Assembly: GCA_964188305.1 (NCBI GenBank)
Contig: OZ076894.1
Strand: one strand, 5' to 3'
Length of the DNA: 64,000 nucleotides
Source: Podarcis bocagei
Taxonomy: Eukaryota
The position numbers and the translations under genes are program-made. The notes under the pieces were generated by a model. That model saw only the letters and a list, made by a program, of their open reading frames with translations. It was not told where the DNA came from and did not search any database. The number at the start of each line of letters is the position of its first letter. Positions within the stretch are counted from its first letter, which is position 1. Shown piece after piece: positions 27,614-63,055 of the stretch.

Positions 27614-28388
27614 CTGCATCAATAATTGACAGAAAGACTGAGTGAGTCTGAATGAACGTGTATACCATGTAAACAGAAAAGCATCATTTCATGTCAATGG
27701 CAAAATTGTCTGGAAGTTAATCCAGGGCTAGTAATCCTCCTAATTTCATTGTCACCACCATCACCACCGACAAACTAATTATTTAGTCTAACAAACAATA
27801 ATCCATAGTTGTAGTTTAGCGTTTGGCTTTGCATTTATGGCAGTGTCCACTACAAATGATACAGAACTTTTCCATAATGTGCCTTGCAACAGGTACAAAT
27901 GCCCAAATAGCTTGGGCAGCGTTCAGGCAGAACTTGTTTTCCTGATGTTTCCTTAAGAGATATCAGCCACATTTTACGTGATCTTTCACAGCGTGTAAAA
28001 GCAGCTTCTGGAAATCTGGTGGAAACTACGGGAAATTTAGAGCGTATTTCTGTGATATGTTTTTCCGGCGGGGGGGGGGGACTTGTTTGCAACACCCCGA
28101 AAACCATAGGAGGTTTGTGCTGTAATCTCACGTGGCAGAATTTGGGGTGGTAATCCCAGTATACAGTTCTTTTTTGTCATGTTAAAATTTAGCGCAATGT
28201 GGCAGTGGCAGTATATCTATCAAAAAGCCACAATTTCATAATGCATTGTAAAAGGTCCTTATTAATTGAGACAGGAAGCATGAGTATTACTACTAGTAAA
28301 AGTAACACAATAAACCCCATGTATGAATGCAGGCTACATCTGGCAAAGCTTTCAAAGTAAGCAGCTCTTTCATACTACTGCTTCTTAC

Positions 28389-28514
28389 CTTCCTTGCAGT
28401 CGTGTTTGTTTTCATGTAGCACAAATCCATTGCGACATTGACATACATAGCTTCCTACAGTGTTGATGCATTCATGCTGGCAGCCACCATTGTCTTTAGA
28501 ACATTCATCCTTAT
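28389..28514 (-). CDS. TLL1: TLL1 coding exon, calcium-binding EGF2
   Basis: ttgtag|AT AAG GAT ... GAA G|gtaaga; 126 nt; (D)[41 protein letters not shown]. Confidence 0.97.
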
Positions 28515-28949
28515 CTACAAGATACACAGGACATTTGTTGTGAGTGGAATATCTTCCTCCAGTTTCCAGAATAAAGTATAGAACGGTTTAGTTACGTTTA
28601 AGTCCAGAAAAGGGAAAAACCAAGGCACTCGTTTTATCCTCTCTTTGTATGCCCATTCATTGCTCAACCTGCAACCTAGTGCAATGGCCATTCTAAAGCA
28701 AATCATTAACACCCAGGCCAACAAACCGCTGCCCATGTTTAATTTTTAGTGCAAAGCCCAAAATGCCTCCCCACTCTTACAGATCCACCTTCAGGCCACA
28801 AAACTGGGGAGGCATTGGGAAATTCCCCCCATCCTGAGGGGAAGCAAAATAAATTCTAGAAATAAACAAGGGACTATGGCTTTACCAAGAAGAGAGGGGT
28901 CAATGAAGGTCACCGTAATTTCCACCACAATGCCTTTTGAATGACACTA

Positions 28950-29175
28950 CAGTGGTACCTCGGTTTAAGAACAGTCCTGTTTAAGAACAATTCAGTTTAC
29001 GAACTCCGCAAAACTGGAAGTAGTGTCCTGGTTTGCGAACTTTACCTCAATCTAAGAACGGAATCCAAAAGGCAGAGGGCGCCTCATTAGGGAAAGCGTG
29101 CCTTGGTATAAGAACAGTTTTGGTTTAAGAATGGACTTCCAGAACGGATTAAGTTCGTAAACCGAGGTACCACTG
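28950..29175. mobile_element. Tc1/mariner (pogo/Tigger-like) MITE
   Basis: TA|cagtggtacctcggttta ... taaaccgaggtaccactg|TA. Confidence 0.93.
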
Positions 29176-30459
29176 TACATCCAAGTGAGGCATTTGGGGG
29201 ACGATGGTGCCATGTCAGTAAACACCCTGCTCTGTGAACATCTAGAATTTCTTATTCCTGATCCCCATATTCTTATTATATTTCTCTCATTTCATCCTGA
29301 CCCCACCCATTTTTGGGGGGAGGGGGTGGCACAGAAGAGAAAAGACTCTCGGCGGGGGGGGGGATGGGCCCATGTCTATAATTTTAAATTATAACTAATT
29401 TTCTTTGTTCCAACAATGTTTCACCAGCAGGTGTGGCAGCATCTGAGTTTATGCTGGGTGTTCGACAAAACCTCCCCTTGCTTTACAGTCCCAAACAGGA
29501 AGCAAAAACATTGCTGATTAATCCTCTGAAGGGCTGCATTTGGCTTCATGGGTCACGACTCGTGCAGTTCTAATCAGTACTATTTAGATGCACGCAACAA
29601 AACAAAACAAAAACAAAAGTATTGAATTTATACCAGTGGCATTTTGGCAGCAGTACCAAAAGTGAGACGAAATAAAATTAGGCTGAACAAGATTCCAAGC
29701 TCAGCACATGCTGGTACTTCTTAATAATACATTGTGATTTATTACGGTTTTTCCCTCTCGAGACAGTGACAAAGGCGCTTTGATCACAATGAATCTGGAC
29801 ATGGCATAACACCTTAAAAAGCAAAACATATTTGAACAGTACATGAAAGAAATAGATGTTATGTATTGCAGGAAAATCTGTAGTAGTACCCTGTTTGCTG
29901 AGTAGTAATCCTCTAAAAATGCTTTTAGTGTGTTAGGCTAAAGCGGGGTGGGGGTGGGGGCAATGTGAGCTGAACTAAACAGCATAAAAATTCATTTGCA
30001 AGGAGAAAAGCCAAACTAGATTAAGAGGCAGTCATTCCAGCAAGACTGCTGCCCCCATTCAGCTGTTATTATTTTAGGTGGGGCTGATCCATTAAATCAA
30101 AACTGGCAAGACTTATTTCTGAAACATATTCAAAATGACACGCCACACTAGATGTTTGTAAGGCCCTCTCTTTTCAGCAAAGCTAAAATAATCAGAGTTG
30201 TTGATGGTTATATCAGAGACTGGAGGACAGTGGCACAGTGGAGGCAGAATGAAAAGAAGCAGAGCTCCAGGACTTTTCTCAGAGCAGGAATGACAATGTC
30301 TTCTACTGGAGTGATAAAGTTACCAGCAGGCCTTTCTTGCCTGGCTTTCAAGTTCATTAGGCTTTCAAGTTCATTAGCTGCAGATTAGTATAGAGGAACT
30401 GATTCACACAGAGAATGAAGAAGCTCACCAAGCTGAGGGTGGGTACCTCTTTCTTTTTA

Positions 30460-30795
30460 CAGTGGTGCCTCGCAAGACGAAAATAATCCGTTCCGCGAGT
30501 CTCTTCGTCTAGCGGTTTTTTCGTCTTGCGAAGCAACCCTATTAGCGGATTAGCGCTATTAGCGGCTTAGTGGCTATTAAAGGCTTAGTGGCTTAGCGGC
30601 TAAAAGGCTATTAGTGGCTTAGCGGCTTAGAAAAAGGGGGGGAGCGGAAAAAACCCGCAAGACTTGCAAGACGTTTTCGTCTTGCGAAGCAAGCCCATAG
30701 GGAAATTCGTCTTGCGAAGCAGCTCAAAAATGGAAAACCCTTTCGTCTAGCAGGTTTTCCGTCTTGCGAGGCATTCATCTTGCGGGGCACCACTG
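30460..30795. mobile_element. Tc1/mariner (pogo/Tigger-like) MITE with internal tandem array
   Basis: TA|cagtggtgcctcgcaagacgaa ... ttcatcttgcggggcaccactg|TA; internal ttagcggc-like units. Confidence 0.92.
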
Positions 30796-31330
30796 TACTC
30801 AGATAGGGCTCCTACTTCATGCCAGCTGTGTAAATTGTGACACTTATTTGCGAGCTGGCTGGCATTTCTGGTTAAAAGTGAAAGGGCTGTGTTTCAGCTG
30901 GCTGAAGGTATTTTGTTAAAGTTTGATGTGTTTTACAGATGGAACAAAAGCAGCTCAGCTGGTGGGGCAGAGACGCAATGATAACTTCTGGGCAGCGTCA
31001 TCACAGCTACGTACCAAGAGGGAGAGGTGGCAGAGAGCTCAGGACTGTGCAGTCACACTGGCAAAGCCATTCTGGCACTGCTGCCAGTGTGTGCCCGCAC
31101 AGCCCTGACTCCCTGCCACCTCACCCCCTCTCCATTTCAACAAGTGGCAGCAACATACCTGCCAGGAAGGTAGCTTTGCAACTGAATGCCACTGGCTGAG
31201 CCACTTCTGAAATTAAACCTATAAAGTGTGAAGTGAGCCCCACTGAGTTCAACTGAGCTTACGCCTAAGGAAACTATGCATAGGAGTGCAGTGACTGTGA
31301 CTGGGCATTAAGCTACGTATTGAAATGTGT

Positions 31331-31331
<1 letters not shown>

Positions 31332-31375
<44 letters not shown>
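31332..31375 (+). repeat. (GT)n microsatellite
   Basis: About 22 units. Confidence 0.95.
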
Positions 31376-31377
<2 letters not shown>

Positions 31378-33063
31378 AGGTGCAATGCATTAATTGCATT
31401 TTAGGACTCTCCCTGGGGAAGTATGGCTAATAGGGGCTGAATATAGCACCACAATGCTGTTACAGAAATGCATATTTAGGGAGGCAAAGCCCTCCCCTTC
31501 ATTAGGACACAGTAAAGGAAGTGTTATTGTCTGAACAAGACCAGCATGCAGTTATTTTATGTCATAGTTGGTACAGCCAAAATCACTGCACATGCGCAAG
31601 CTGCCTTTTACCATCAGTTTCTGGCAACAGCTTTTTATTTGCCCTGTGTTCTCTGTCCCTCTTCTTTAACTGAAACTTGCGTACAGTAATCCAAAGGAAC
31701 AAAATAGCTGCATTGTCCAGCACTCCAACATCCTACATGCTGAAATGTATGACCCACACAGACTCCTCTTCAAGAAGCTTGGAGGGATTTCACACATCAT
31801 CAGTTATTGGAAATAACTCTCTCTAGTCCTCCTCTTCCTGCAGGTATTTTCTCTCTCTCTCTCTGTTTCACCACATGGGGAAGCCTTTGTGAAAACTACC
31901 GGCACATAGGATTCTCACTTCCTGGCGAGAGTCCCTTCTATAAGCTAACGACACAAGCTTTGTGTCTCCCTACAACAAAACAAAGAAAAGGGACCAAGTT
32001 CTATGCAAAGTTTCTGCTGGCCCAATACAAATGTGGTCTGCCAGCAGGCTACTGACTTGCAGGGAAAATGTTAACTAATCTAAATGCTAGACTGTAATTT
32101 AATTAAATAGAAATGTGCCATTTACATTTGTGATCGTGCAAGGATCAGGAAAGCCAGCATCCGAAGAGCCCCTGTGTATACCCAAGGAAGCCTAGAAGGC
32201 TGTGATGCATGCAAAGAAACACTACATGCAGACTTTGGACTCCAGCCAAAACAAATGAGCATTAATTGGTGGAAAGATTCCAACTTAGACTGTTGAAGTT
32301 CATCCTGAAGCCTAGAGCAACAATACAGATATACCCATTTAGTGTGAGAAAGCTTGCTTTTTATCTCTTTAGAAAGCAAACCTGTGACAAATTTTCTCCT
32401 GCAAAAGGTAATGGAAAAGGCAAGCAGAGAACTGACCAGGGAATGGTGACCTTTCTAGCATTTCTTCTCCTTAACAAGCAGTTGACTAACAAACTGGTCA
32501 AATGTATAGAAAGTGAGCTCAAAAGTACTTATTACAAATAGCAGGTCCATGAATAAAGAGCTCTAATTTCTCAGAGGCTATCAAAGCCCTCTCTGTTCAA
32601 TCAAAATACCTGAAATGGAAAAGTCATGTTTGTGTATATTCCGTCAAAAGCTGTTTTGCTCAAGGTATATCTGCTTTATTGAAACAAATCTTTTGTTCCC
32701 TCTCTAGCGGTATTGTATAATGATCACAGGACAGAAAGTGAAACTTCAGCAGAATACAATAGTTTGGCACAGTTAGTGAATGGTGCAGCAAAAGTCTTAT
32801 CTACATTTTACATAAGCCAGTGTAGATTTCCCATCATGTGCATTCCAAATTGAAAATCTTAGAAGGGGAAAAAAATTAGTGATTAGTTAGAGAAACAAAT
32901 GTTTTGCTGACTAAATGCAAACCATTTGTTGTGCTCAAGAGATGGAACTCTGTCTCCCAGTTTTGAATGGATCCTTTGTGTATTTCTCTCTGTCAGTAAA
33001 AGGGAAAGATCCATTCTCAGCAATATGTTAGATTTTAACCATTCACAAGACATAAGGTCATAC

Positions 33064-33183
33064 CTCTGAGACCCTCAGAGGCCAGTCTGTGAATTATACG
33101 TACTTGGCCTGAAGGGGCAACCTCTATCAAGTCCTTGCATGATTCAAAAACAAAAATTTTCTCCTTGCAGGCAGCTCTCTTGT
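33064..33183 (-). CDS. Candidate alternative TLL1 exon (cassette, or terminal if read to the TAA at 33035-33037)
   Basis: Acceptor ttttttcctacag|AC AAG AGA GCT, donor AGAG|gtatga; 120 nt, phase 1-1, open in the TLL1 frame: (D)KRAACKEKIFVFESCKDLIEVAPSGQVRIIHRLASEGLR. No transcript evidence available. Confidence 0.4.
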
Positions 33184-33459
33184 CTGTAGGAAAAAATGTA
33201 CCAGGATGGCACCAAAAATGAGTGACTGAGTGATTCTTCAAACATCAATCTGCTCAAGGGCAGTTTCATTATAACTTTTCATCTGTTTATAGTAACATGA
33301 TCATTGCTATTCTACAATCCCACCTCCTCTGCCAATATACAGTCATATAGGATAATAAAATGAATTCATTTTCAGAATGGAACAAAACCAATTATACAAA
33401 ACTGATCATACAAAGAACAAACGTCACTGGAACACTAGAACTTTAGCGGTTAAACAATG

Positions 33460-33783
33460 TGAAGGAGCGTCTCCACCCCTATCGTTCTACCCGGACACTG
33501 AGGTCCAGCACCGAGGGCCTTCTGGCAGTTCCCTCACTGCGAGAAGCCAAGTTACAGGGAACCAGGCAGAGGGCCTTCTCAGTAGTGGCGCCTTCCCTGT
33601 GGAACACCCTCCCACCAGATGTCAAAGAGAACAACAACTACCAGGCTTTTAGAAGACATCTGAAGGCAGACCTGTTTCGGGAAGCTTTTAATGTTTGATG
33701 TATTATAGTATTTTAATATTCTTTTGGAAGCCGCCCAGAGTGGCTGGGGAAGCCCAGCCAGATGGGCGGGGTATAAATAATAA

Positions 33784-33826
<43 letters not shown>
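33460..33826 (+). mobile_element. L2-clade LINE 3' fragment with (TTA)n tail
   Basis: ORF KERLHPYRSTRTLRS...RAFSVVAPSLWNTLP...FRRHLKADLF; 3' end gggcggggtataaataataaa(tta)n. Confidence 0.92.
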
Positions 33827-33827
<1 letters not shown>

Positions 33828-35801
33828 GTATTTCAGCTTGGAATTAAACAAACTAATTAATAAGATGTTGTTGTTGTTATTGCTATTTTAAAGAATTAAA
33901 CTTATAATACTTCATTTATTTATAAAAGTTTCTTTTTTGGGGGGTGAAGTAGAATTCTGTGTTTACTCTGCTCTGAACCCACTGCAGTCTATCATATGTT
34001 AATATTTCTTCTTATGTATCCAATGATCCTCTAGATTTGGTTTCCTACTATATTTTTTCCTATTAAAACTTTTGCAGACTCTGGACTTTGAAGCTGTCAC
34101 TCAGTGTCAAACTGGACTGCAATGCAGGGGATCTATGATTAGGATTTTCTGTGGATTATTCTGAAGTTTGAAGGTCTTGGGAGGATTTTATTGACGCCAT
34201 GTTAGCTGGGTAGAGGGATTCAACCCTTCTATCAGAGCTATTTGCTCTGTATAAATACACCCAGGGCTGCTATTCACCCTGAAAGGGAAAATACGGAGGG
34301 AACCTTTTCCCCCATATGGGTGAATAATAGCTTATGGTAGAAGGGTTTAAATCATGAAAATGGAAGTTGAAAAGGGTTAAATCCCCACTCCTAGTGCTAT
34401 GGTTCCAGGCCAATTCTGCCATCTTCTTTGTTCTAATCAAAAAACTCTATTGATCCCATGATTCTGTTTCCTAACTGAGCTGCAGAAATCCAACCAGATG
34501 GGCATGTTTTCATATAATTCACCTTTCCAAATTAATTTTTTTATTCTTTATGATTCATAGGATCTTTATTTCATTACTATTAGCACATACACTACAATAG
34601 TCACAATAATAGTCCTTCAGAATCTGACTTCAGTGGCCTGATAAGCATCCTGACTTCTAACAAATGACTTCTAACATATGAACTTACACTGCCTCTTGTA
34701 AGCATAAAGTCATCTTTGTATACACTGTTAGATATTTTTCAAAAGGTGTCAGTGCTTTAAATTAGTATCCTGAATATGCCATCTGTATATTTCTCATAGC
34801 GTGTTTTTGGCCTAGAAGTTTCTGCATGTAGCCAAGAAAAGATTAGCAATGGTGTTATTTCAGTGGGAATGTTTAGCTATATTCATACTATAGTAGCAGT
34901 TATTCAGCTCTCCATTCAGCATTGATGTCCAGGAAATGCTATTTCCAACAGCGTCTGGCGTACAGGATTAGATTATGCTATCAACGCTACTAATTATTTA
35001 TGTTAAATTGTTAGTGAGATTCAGTAATCACTTGAATAGTCCCACTGCCCTCAGCTGCATAATCGTCTCCTACGCTCTTCAATGGCTCCACCCATTATCT
35101 CATTTTTGTCTCTATGCCTGGAAATTCCTTCCAGAATGCCTACCCACAGTCTTTCCTAGAAAATTCCTCCCTCCAAAAAATCAGTTTTCCCCTGAAGCTC
35201 TTGGCTTAGGGGGCAATCCTTAGGGAGAGATCAGATCCGCTGAACTGAGCAGCTTAGCATACAGAAGATCTCTAGCTCAGGGGGTTCCCCAATCCTGGAG
35301 GTAAACTGGGGGGGGGGCTGGAGGGGGCAGACTTACAATGGATCCCAAGTCTGTTTAGCTTGGTCACATGACCTGGCAACCCAGTCTAAATTAAGCTGCC
35401 CAAAAGGGTGGTGTAACTCAAAACACACAATGGACGTCAGTGGCGGGGACCTGATCCTCAGGAGCAGGCTCAGCTGGCAGCCCTGGCCACACTGCCATGA
35501 TAGACAACTCAGGATTTGTTATAACTCCCGGCCAATTGCACAGCCAGAACAGCAGGATATAAGCTGCACATCTCCCAGCCTCACTTCACTTTACTTCAGT
35601 CTTCCTGCAATAAGGTGTAGCCCACTCAGGAGAGGGGCTCAGGCACTTTGCGCTTGGGAAATCCGCTCCACAAAAACTGGACACTTTGAGCAATTGTCTA
35701 ACAGAAACCAAACACCGCAGGAATTGAAACAATGTGTTTATGCTAACATGTCTCTTCCAAGCTTCTTTTCCCAGCAGTAATGAGGCAGCTGCAGTCTAGA
35801 G

Positions 35802-40482: not shown

Positions 40483-40663
40483 CTGAAAAGAAGTGAGCCT
40501 TGAAACCCTTTTTTGAGACTGTGTTATCCGACCTGAACTCGATTCTCATGTTGTTATATTGTGATGTGATAACTTCAGGCACTTCTGTACCACAAAATTT
40601 GCCATGCAGTTTGGAATCAGAAGAAAGGCCACTACGGATTTCTACATAATCATATTTACACAC
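40483..40663 (-). CDS. TLL1: TLL1 coding exon, CUB3 end
   Basis: tctcag|GTG TGT ... TCA G|gtatta; 181 nt; [60 protein letters not shown]. Confidence 0.97.
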
Positions 40664-62095: not shown

Positions 62096-63055
62096 CTGAA
62101 AGAAATTAGATATTATAGCAGCTGAGGGTTGCCTGACAAAGTGCAAAGAAATTGTGTTTCTTCTTTACTGTGAATAATTAACAGCAGAGGCAGGAGATGC
62201 TTTATACAAAGCAACATTTTTGAAACAATCCGACAAGGACATTTTGTCCTGTCCAAAACATTATTTCCATGTCCTTTCCCCTTACTTTAAATCAAAATTA
62301 AAAAATTACAGCATGCCTTTAAATGTCACTGCTGACCATCAGGCAAGTAAATAGTAACAACAACCTTATGTTTCCACACAACAGAAAAATAAGTGGAACA
62401 ATTGTCATGATGCTGAACACTAACCAGAATTGTTCATGTATTTTATATGTTAGATAAGGATATATTCATATTAAACTAGAAATTATTTTTAAAAGATGTG
62501 CATAAATTTCTTGTAACAATACTGATAATAAAGCATAGCAAATATAACAACCAATGACATTTATTTTATTGCTATACCTTATTCTTTTACTCTATTTCCT
62601 ACTTAGCTGTCTATCATACTGTTTCAGGGCAGAACGGGGTTCTGACTAATTTTTCCCTTCCCAGTGAATTTCAGTAGAAACTGAAGTATTTATATGCCAT
62701 TAAAGTTCATTCACTTTTCACTCCAGCTTATCTGCCATTTATCCTTATAACTTTAAATCAGCTATTTGTTTCTCCTGTTGATTGGGTAGCATGGGCTGAA
62801 GGACAGCTCTTTGAAGCTCGTTACCTTGCCATTAGTAAGAGTAAGATCAGATTTTGCTAAAATACTCTGTCACATCCATTTTGAGGACATTAAAATGCCA
62901 TCTGCTACTCATTGAGGACTACAAGCATCATCATTTATCCATATTTTGTTGTATGATGTAGCAATCTGTGATGGCTGAATTGGTGGTGGTAACAACAACA
63001 TTTGTACACTACCTAGTGTCCCACATTGTACATCTGGTACACTGCTTAGAACGTA

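Follow-up and report, generated by a model that had tools for sequence, protein, structure and literature searches.

A probable conserved cassette exon between the CUB3 and EGF2 exons of TLL1 in the lizard Podarcis bocagei

Introduction

Tolloid-like 1 (TLL-1), the product of the gene TLL1, forms a tight calcium-dependent dimer via its EGF2, CUB4 and CUB5 domains, which restrains the enzyme (PMC3878766). When TLL-1 is cut after CUB3 by engineering (constructs TLL1TC3 and TLL1TC3-T), it becomes a monomer whose activity on chordin is about double that of the full-length protein, and the short form BMP-1 is more active since it is without the dimerizing tail (PMC3878766). In the BMP1 gene, the splice branch between the short form (BMP-1) and the long form (mTLD) lies at the boundary after CUB3 and before EGF2. 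Here, we analyzed the same boundary of TLL1 in a stretch of 64,000 nucleotides (nt) from contig OZ076894.1 of Podarcis bocagei (assembly GCA_964188305.1), called the window in the following. At positions 33183–33064 of its minus strand, we find a 120 nt alternative TLL1 exon of phase 1-1, which is very likely a genuine, anciently conserved and alternatively spliced cassette exon.

Two isoforms are known for human TLL1 and one for mouse, and no variant at the CUB3/EGF2 junction is described there (PMC6996343). Human isoform 2 (approx. 44 kDa) is terminated by an additional exon that lies between exons 9 and 10 and shortens the protein, and its enzyme activity is considered to differ (PMC6996343); in this respect it resembles the present case, but its extra exon is located much further upstream than the CUB3/EGF2 exon. 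The similarity to BMP1 is closer in position, as the branch boundary is the same and a TLL1 form reading through the donor of the exon would share the domain make-up of BMP-1. Unlike in BMP1, however, the main annotated TLL1 product carries an internal cassette and keeps EGF2-CUB4-CUB5, and a truncated form has been annotated in just one species. The TLL1TC3 constructs also end after CUB3 like the read-through product, but they are laboratory constructs of mammalian TLL-1 and not a natural isoform. A description of the exon was not found in the literature. As far as the literature was searched, the exon is therefore apparently undescribed, yet it is already present in public annotation.

Results

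Exon structure and reading frame

On the minus strand of the window, the exon opens with AC at 33183, preceded by the acceptor ttttttcctacag; its last base is 33064, where the donor GAG/gtatga follows. The G at 40483, carried over from the exon encoding the second half of CUB3 (CUB3b), yields an Asp codon, which is followed by 39 open codons (33181–33065). The last base of the exon is carried into the EGF2 exon (28514–28389), and no stop codon occurs in frame. When the frame is read past the donor, nine further codons precede a TAA at 33037–33035, and an AATAAA is found at 32680–32675, 383 nt downstream of the donor (both minus strand). A preliminary description of this locus, made from the sequence alone, had listed the acceptor, the donor, the length of 120 nt, phase 1-1, the open frame, the flanks, the read-through stop and the AATAAA, and all of these proved correct on re-reading of the sequence.

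Pfam detects a CUB domain in the upstream flanking exon (5e-19) and EGF_CA/FXa_inhibition in the downstream one; in the true EGF2 exon, five EGF-type families matched above their cut-offs. The insert peptide of 40 amino acids (aa) matched no Pfam family. Using tblastn, residues approx. 342–1047 of P. muralis TLL1 isoform X1 mapped to minus-strand positions 62096–22443 of the window, with 100% identity for the CUB3a and CUB4b exons and 89–98% for the other exon matches, whose spans overrun the exon ends. By this agreement, the window is DNA of P. muralis or of a species very close to it. The Pfam matches of the flanks and the tblastn exon map place the branch point of a short form in the intron between CUB3 and EGF2.

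Public gene models

The peptide encoded by the exon is identical to residues 724–763 of P. muralis isoform X1 (P0025; XP_077790271/2), situated between ...HFFS and DKDEC..., and isoform X2 (P0018) of the same species equals X1 minus exactly the 40 insert residues. Among lacertids, the insert is contained in P. muralis X1, X3, XP_028600382 and the UniProt entries A0A670J3I9 and A0A670J3I2, in P. raffonei X1 and in Lacerta agilis X1. Other squamate models with the insert are Anolis sagrei X1, Pogona vitticeps X1, Hemicordylus capensis X1/X2 and Paroedura picta X1/X2. It is further present in a turtle (Emys orbicularis X1), in birds (Gallus gallus A0A8V0Y070, Coturnix X4, Meleagris, Eudromia, Leptosomus, Morus, Podargus, Pterocles and Willisornis) and in an amphibian, the caecilian Geotrypetes seraphini, whose model is flagged LOW QUALITY. 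Sister isoforms without the insert are listed in the same species. In total, the models of about 20 species show the cassette form and one shows a short form.

Exactly this insert of 40 aa with two cysteines, as deduced from the window, is found between CUB3 and EGF2 in public TLL1 models from many species. Contrary to the preliminary description, the exon is not hidden, because it is already in the public gene models of P. muralis and many other species.

The insert is 41 aa long in the caecilian, turtle, gecko and cordylid, and 40 aa long in birds and in lacertids plus iguanians (alignment A4, columns 119–159). Both cysteines, ten residues apart, are conserved. The residue lost is an Ala in birds and a Val in lacertids plus iguanians, and the length tracks phylogeny; the two whole-codon deletions are independent.

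The models were collected by two protein searches and from cluster listings. In the first, two exon peptides were aligned under a long unrelated protein (P0001), which allowed full-length proteins to qualify; in the second, a region query was used (residues 697–736 of database protein P0008). Both searches returned TLL1 proteins only, which for a query of 40 aa is weak evidence against homology with the BMP1 short-form exon. A phmmer search of 50%-identity cluster representatives with a 48-aa query yielded only three tandem-repeat artifacts; the representatives evidently do not contain the exon, and this negative outcome was misleading. The clusters mix isoforms, and members with the exon may be concealed behind a representative.

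In addition, P. muralis isoform X3 and the UniProt models (P0007, P0006 and P0061; 952–970 aa) match X1 only from residue 341 on, while their N-terminal part differs. Either a second 5′ end or an artifact of the models, located upstream of the window or at its edge, is suggested by this difference.

Conservation in a distant, bird-like ortholog

Bird-like host contigs (L001–L005) were available from metagenome assemblies, and 20 kilobases (kb) around the site were compared with the window. Three records carry the open reading frame (ORF), namely JGI 3300005287, JGI 3300000035 and ENA ERZ27241762, which are mutually 99.9% identical. Within approx. 16 kb, only seven collinear pieces align to the window: five TLL1 exons, the candidate island (the conserved segment around the exon) and one further intron island. 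Nucleotide identity is 82–87% for the TLL1 exons CUB3a, CUB3b, EGF2, CUB4a and CUB4b and 81.7% over 367 columns for the candidate island (window 32869–33223).

In the bird-like contig, AG and GT are kept, the donor reads gtacga, and the exon is open and 120 nt long. Its nucleotide identity to the window is 93% and hence above that of the neighboring coding exons. The eight substitutions comprise four synonymous and four conservative ones (Arg>Lys, Glu>Gln, Ser>Ala, Gln>Arg), the two indels are exactly 3 nt each, and both cysteines are retained. Only 4 of 38 third positions differ, compared to 34–44% in the constitutive neighbors. The latter show 93–100% protein identity, with 100% for the CUB3b (40483–40663) and EGF2 exons; in the EGF2 exon, 15 of the 16 substitutions are at third positions and the remaining one is in the split first codon. 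Just past the donor of the candidate exon, the bird-like contig has indels of 1 and 6 nt and a different read-through tail. Conserved alternative exons are typically recognized by this combination of slow synonymous change, a looser protein, indels of whole codons and flanks that are conserved as well.

A human origin of the bird-like contigs was considered and rejected: no Alu motif occurs in the 20 kb, only three contigs in the collection carry the ORF, the five exons span 16 kb as in the lizard, and the peptide has bird-specific states. In the latter, the Ala is lost, the Val is present and Gln is replaced by Arg, and it is one residue off several bird TLL1 models. The CR1 3′-end motif was searched for in these contigs and not found. 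Scans of other collections gave one chance bacterial match (L006) among genome contigs and none among viral contigs.

The metagenome records themselves contain vertebrate TLL1 host DNA (Ga0065711_1000050, Ga0181612_147714, HCE12Call500_c0161674 and ERZ27241762 k141_73133; up to 119.6 kb), and a 132-aa ORF antisense to the exon (L003:10001–10399, plus strand) is called as a gene in them. This is host contamination combined with a spurious antisense gene call.

Conservation in organisms D and F

Contigs of two further organisms, termed D and F (depth approx. 12, apparently genomic), align to the island at 32882–33260. The comparison covers 34 of the 38 places at which organism D differs, and part of the differences of organism F. 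For organism D, 2 differences are listed in the 120-nt exon vs. 20 in 259 nt of flank (16 in 182 nt downstream, 4 in 77 nt upstream), a contrast with P = 0.004 in a binomial and P = 0.018 in a Fisher test on the listed differences. The low-divergence zone (33056–33187) consists of the exon, the donor consensus and the AG, and it ends within 5–9 nt of AG and GT. There are no indels between 33055 and 33260 in organism D. Both organisms keep AG and GT, with the first listed difference past the donor at 33055. The acceptor changes (33188, 33191) are both T>C and, consequently, the polypyrimidine tract is preserved. Both listed exon changes are non-synonymous and at first codon positions (Glu>Gln, Gly>Ser), and in the EGF2 exon all six listed changes are at third positions.

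The preliminary description had proposed to check splice sites and frame in relatives, and this check came out in favor of the exon: AG and GT are present in both D and F as well as in the bird-like contig, the frame is open in the latter, and the peptide is found from caecilian to birds.

Splice-site strength

Splice sites were scored with our own position-weight matrix, which is not a curated model. On the minus strand of the 64-kb window, the acceptor ranks among the top 30–36 of approx. 4,200 AG sites and the donor among the top 71 of approx. 3,500 GT sites. At the score thresholds of the exon, eight AG..GT pairs of 50–250 nt exist on this strand, and the sole open pair of phase 1-1 is the exon; the plus strand has nine pairs, none of them open. 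If the thresholds are lowered to the weaker scores of the true flanking exons, each strand offers 25–30 open phase 1-1 pseudo-exons and, therefore, the sequence alone could not exclude a chance origin. Chance is excluded by the cross-species data and the annotation, not by the splice-site scores.

Donor hairpin and read-through form

The donor lies in a 9-bp hairpin (GCCUCUGAG / GGU / CUCAGAGGU). Its folding energy of −14.2 kcal/mol is within the top 0.5% of the 31-nt windows of the intron, compared to 0 to −6.4 kcal/mol at constitutive donors. The bird-like contig has the identical hairpin, and the single change in organisms D and F (33073) falls in the loop. The hairpin may limit donor use and thereby tune inclusion, skipping and read-through. 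However, coding constraint alone could explain its conservation.

Read-through has a counterpart among public models. Isoform X3 of Zootoca vivipara (XP_034968009, P0009, 773 aa) follows the long form to CUB3, contains the exon and stops in exactly the nine-residue tail of the window, as had been predicted for a short isoform. Against a short form, tail and stop are not conserved, since both D and F read TCA in place of the TAA, and in the bird-like contig a 1-nt indel shifts the frame of the tail; a stop within 9–11 codons of the donor is nonetheless found in both the lizard and the bird-like contig. Neither AATAAA nor ATTAAA occurs within 775 nt in the bird-like contig. As the short form is modeled in one species and neither its tail, its stop nor a poly(A) signal is conserved, the case for it is weak and its support thin, and Zootoca X3 may be a retained-intron transcript.

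Regarding the region of the AATAAA, the contig of organism F joins 31750 to 32885, i.e., approx. 1.1 kb of the window (31751–32884) is absent or replaced there, and this stretch contains the AATAAA of the window. The features of the locus are compiled in Table 1.

Table 1. Positions of the exon, its neighbors and associated elements in the window.
Feature	Position	Strand	Remarks
Cassette exon (probable)	33064..33183	minus	120 nt; encodes 40 aa, two of them Cys, inserted between CUB3 and EGF2
Polypyrimidine tract and AG acceptor	33184..33196	minus	from sequence, splice-site score and cross-species comparison
Donor gtatgacc	33056..33063	minus	from sequence, splice-site score and cross-species comparison
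Upstream constitutive exon, second half of CUB3 (CUB3b)	40483..40663	minus	last residues ...KAHFFS, then one base
Downstream constitutive exon, EGF2 (DKDEC...)	28389..28514	minus	126 nt; first two bases complete Asp
Read-through tail, 9 codons and TAA	33035..33063	minus	would end a short BMP1-like isoform
AATAAA, candidate poly(A) signal	32675..32680	minus	outside the conserved island
Conserved downstream intron flank	32869..33063	minus	indels not multiples of three; belongs to the island shared with the bird-like contig, D and F
9-bp hairpin	33062..33082	minus	pairs the last exon bases with the donor GU

RNA reads, repeats and other elements of the intron

Two bulk RNA runs with the same species label were inspected. 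Coverage amounts to 1–2 reads for the EGF2 exon and zero for the candidate exon, and this test is without power because TLL1 is almost unexpressed in both runs. Large read pile-ups are seen at 28900–29299, 30300–30899 and 33300–33899, where 85% of the reads continue into unlike sequence; these pile-ups are repeats. The repeat elements at 33459–33698, 28900–29299 and 30300–30899 reach hundreds of RNA reads per position. The element at 33459–33698 has a summed depth of approx. 1,870 in organism F and is, therefore, a high-copy family shared across species, similar to short interspersed nuclear elements.

A search of 28300–34300 against Rfam gave no match on the candidate island, and folding of the whole island on the sense strand was not significant (z = −1.08). 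At 30999–31156 (minus strand), several microRNA (miRNA) precursor families scored far below their gathering scores (best MIR1858, 42 bits vs. 137), and the segment is probably a long hairpin or a transposon inverted repeat, not a miRNA gene. A second conserved island of the same intron aligns to the bird-like contig at 29792–30086 (322 columns, 70.8% identity); the segment that aligns to organisms D and F is 29904–30141. It is probably a conserved non-coding element.

Discussion

Proposed role of the exon

When included, the exon adds 40 residues, or 41 in certain lineages, two of which are conserved cysteines, exactly where the BMP1-like core (protease, CUB1, CUB2, EGF1, CUB3) meets the C-terminal tail (EGF2, CUB4, CUB5). 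Skipping it gives the canonical protein of approx. 1007 aa. If the acceptor is used and the donor is not, translation would stop nine codons on, resulting in a protein of approx. 773 aa with the domain make-up of BMP1, a form annotated in one lacertid only. Since the three C-terminal domains dimerize and restrain TLL1, we infer that the insert probably alters the geometry of the hinge that connects the core to this tail, and that the read-through form would escape the dimer restraint.

Several points weigh against a genuine cassette exon. An annotation does not equal expression, pipelines can pass an exon from species to species via protein evidence, and two of the models with the insert are flagged LOW QUALITY. 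The RNA runs, in which TLL1 is nearly silent, have no read on the exon. The contrast between exon and flank in organism D would vanish if its four undisplayed differences all fell into the exon. No compensatory changes were seen in the donor hairpin at the DNA level, where structural constraint is not separable from coding constraint. Finally, the insert matches no Pfam family, and a structure prediction of CUB3-insert-EGF2 with AlphaFold2 (20 near-identical rows) reached a predicted local distance difference test (pLDDT) score of 34 and was unusable.

Alternative explanations

The exon might instead serve mainly as an alternative terminal exon, in which the hairpin-masked donor is skipped and polyadenylation takes place downstream, so that a natural, BMP1-like short TLL1 is formed and the cassette is a minor product. 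Zootoca X3, which ends in the tail found in the window, the stop following within 9–11 codons in lizard and bird-like contig, the location of the donor inside a hairpin of −14.2 kcal/mol and the conservation of approx. 200 nt downstream would all fit such an arrangement. However, the donor GT, the phase-1 end and the length of 120 or 123 nt are conserved, which would be needless for a purely terminal exon, whereas the tail peptide, the position of the stop and an AATAAA or ATTAAA are not. Further, about 20 species have cassette models compared to one with the short form. We therefore regard a mainly terminal exon as unlikely.

Another explanation is that the island is a conserved non-coding element, i.e., an enhancer or splicing regulator, and that annotation pipelines have spread an exon look-alike via protein homology. 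In its favor, identity to the bird-like contig exceeds that of neighboring coding exons (93% vs. 82–87%), both exon changes in organisms D and F are non-synonymous, RNA reads on the exon are missing in runs in which TLL1 is nearly silent, and a second, probably non-exonic island exists in the same intron. On the other hand, the zone of low divergence stops within a few nucleotides of AG and GT, and in about 20 species the insert differs in length by complete codons only, whereas the flanks have indels of 1 and 6 nt. The frame is open from caecilian to birds, and several sets of models (NCBI XP_, UniProt, GenBank KAM/KAF) include the exon, each with sister isoforms without it. A non-coding element is, on balance, very improbable.

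The alternatives raised in the preliminary description, namely an intronic pseudo-exon that arose by chance or a copy of the EGF2 exon (126 nt) that has decayed, can practically be dismissed, despite the 25–30 open pseudo-exons per strand at flanking-exon scores and the Asp-Lys with which both exons start, as the exon is annotated and conserved across tetrapods, from caecilian to birds and lizards, with in-frame length changes only, no EGF family matches the insert even at E ≤ 10, and its two cysteines do not form the six-cysteine pattern.

Accepting a genuine cassette exon as very likely, its origin may be considered. The exon could be the TLL1 counterpart of the terminal exon of the BMP1 short form and pre-date the vertebrate genome duplications, with the conserved hairpin acting as a three-way switch among skipping, the 40-aa hinge insert and read-through; we consider this improbable. 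If it were true, non-mammalian tetrapods would have a natural, monomeric TLL1 form of high activity, which mammals may have lost.

Significance

Nothing found here changes what is known about the tolloid family. A low synonymous rate, conserved flanks and a length that is a multiple of three are general traits of conserved cassette exons; all of them are seen here, and the exon is in this regard an ordinary member of its class. The case also illustrates that a true alternative exon can be picked out from raw sequence, and that an exon called "hidden" needs to be checked against isoform-level annotation. The exon puts a conserved insert with two cysteines, or else a stop, right at the hinge that joins the catalytic core of TLL1 to its dimerizing, restraining tail. 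Because of this position, tolloid specialists might test whether TLL1 activity is tuned by splicing in non-mammalian tetrapods, as it is in BMP1.

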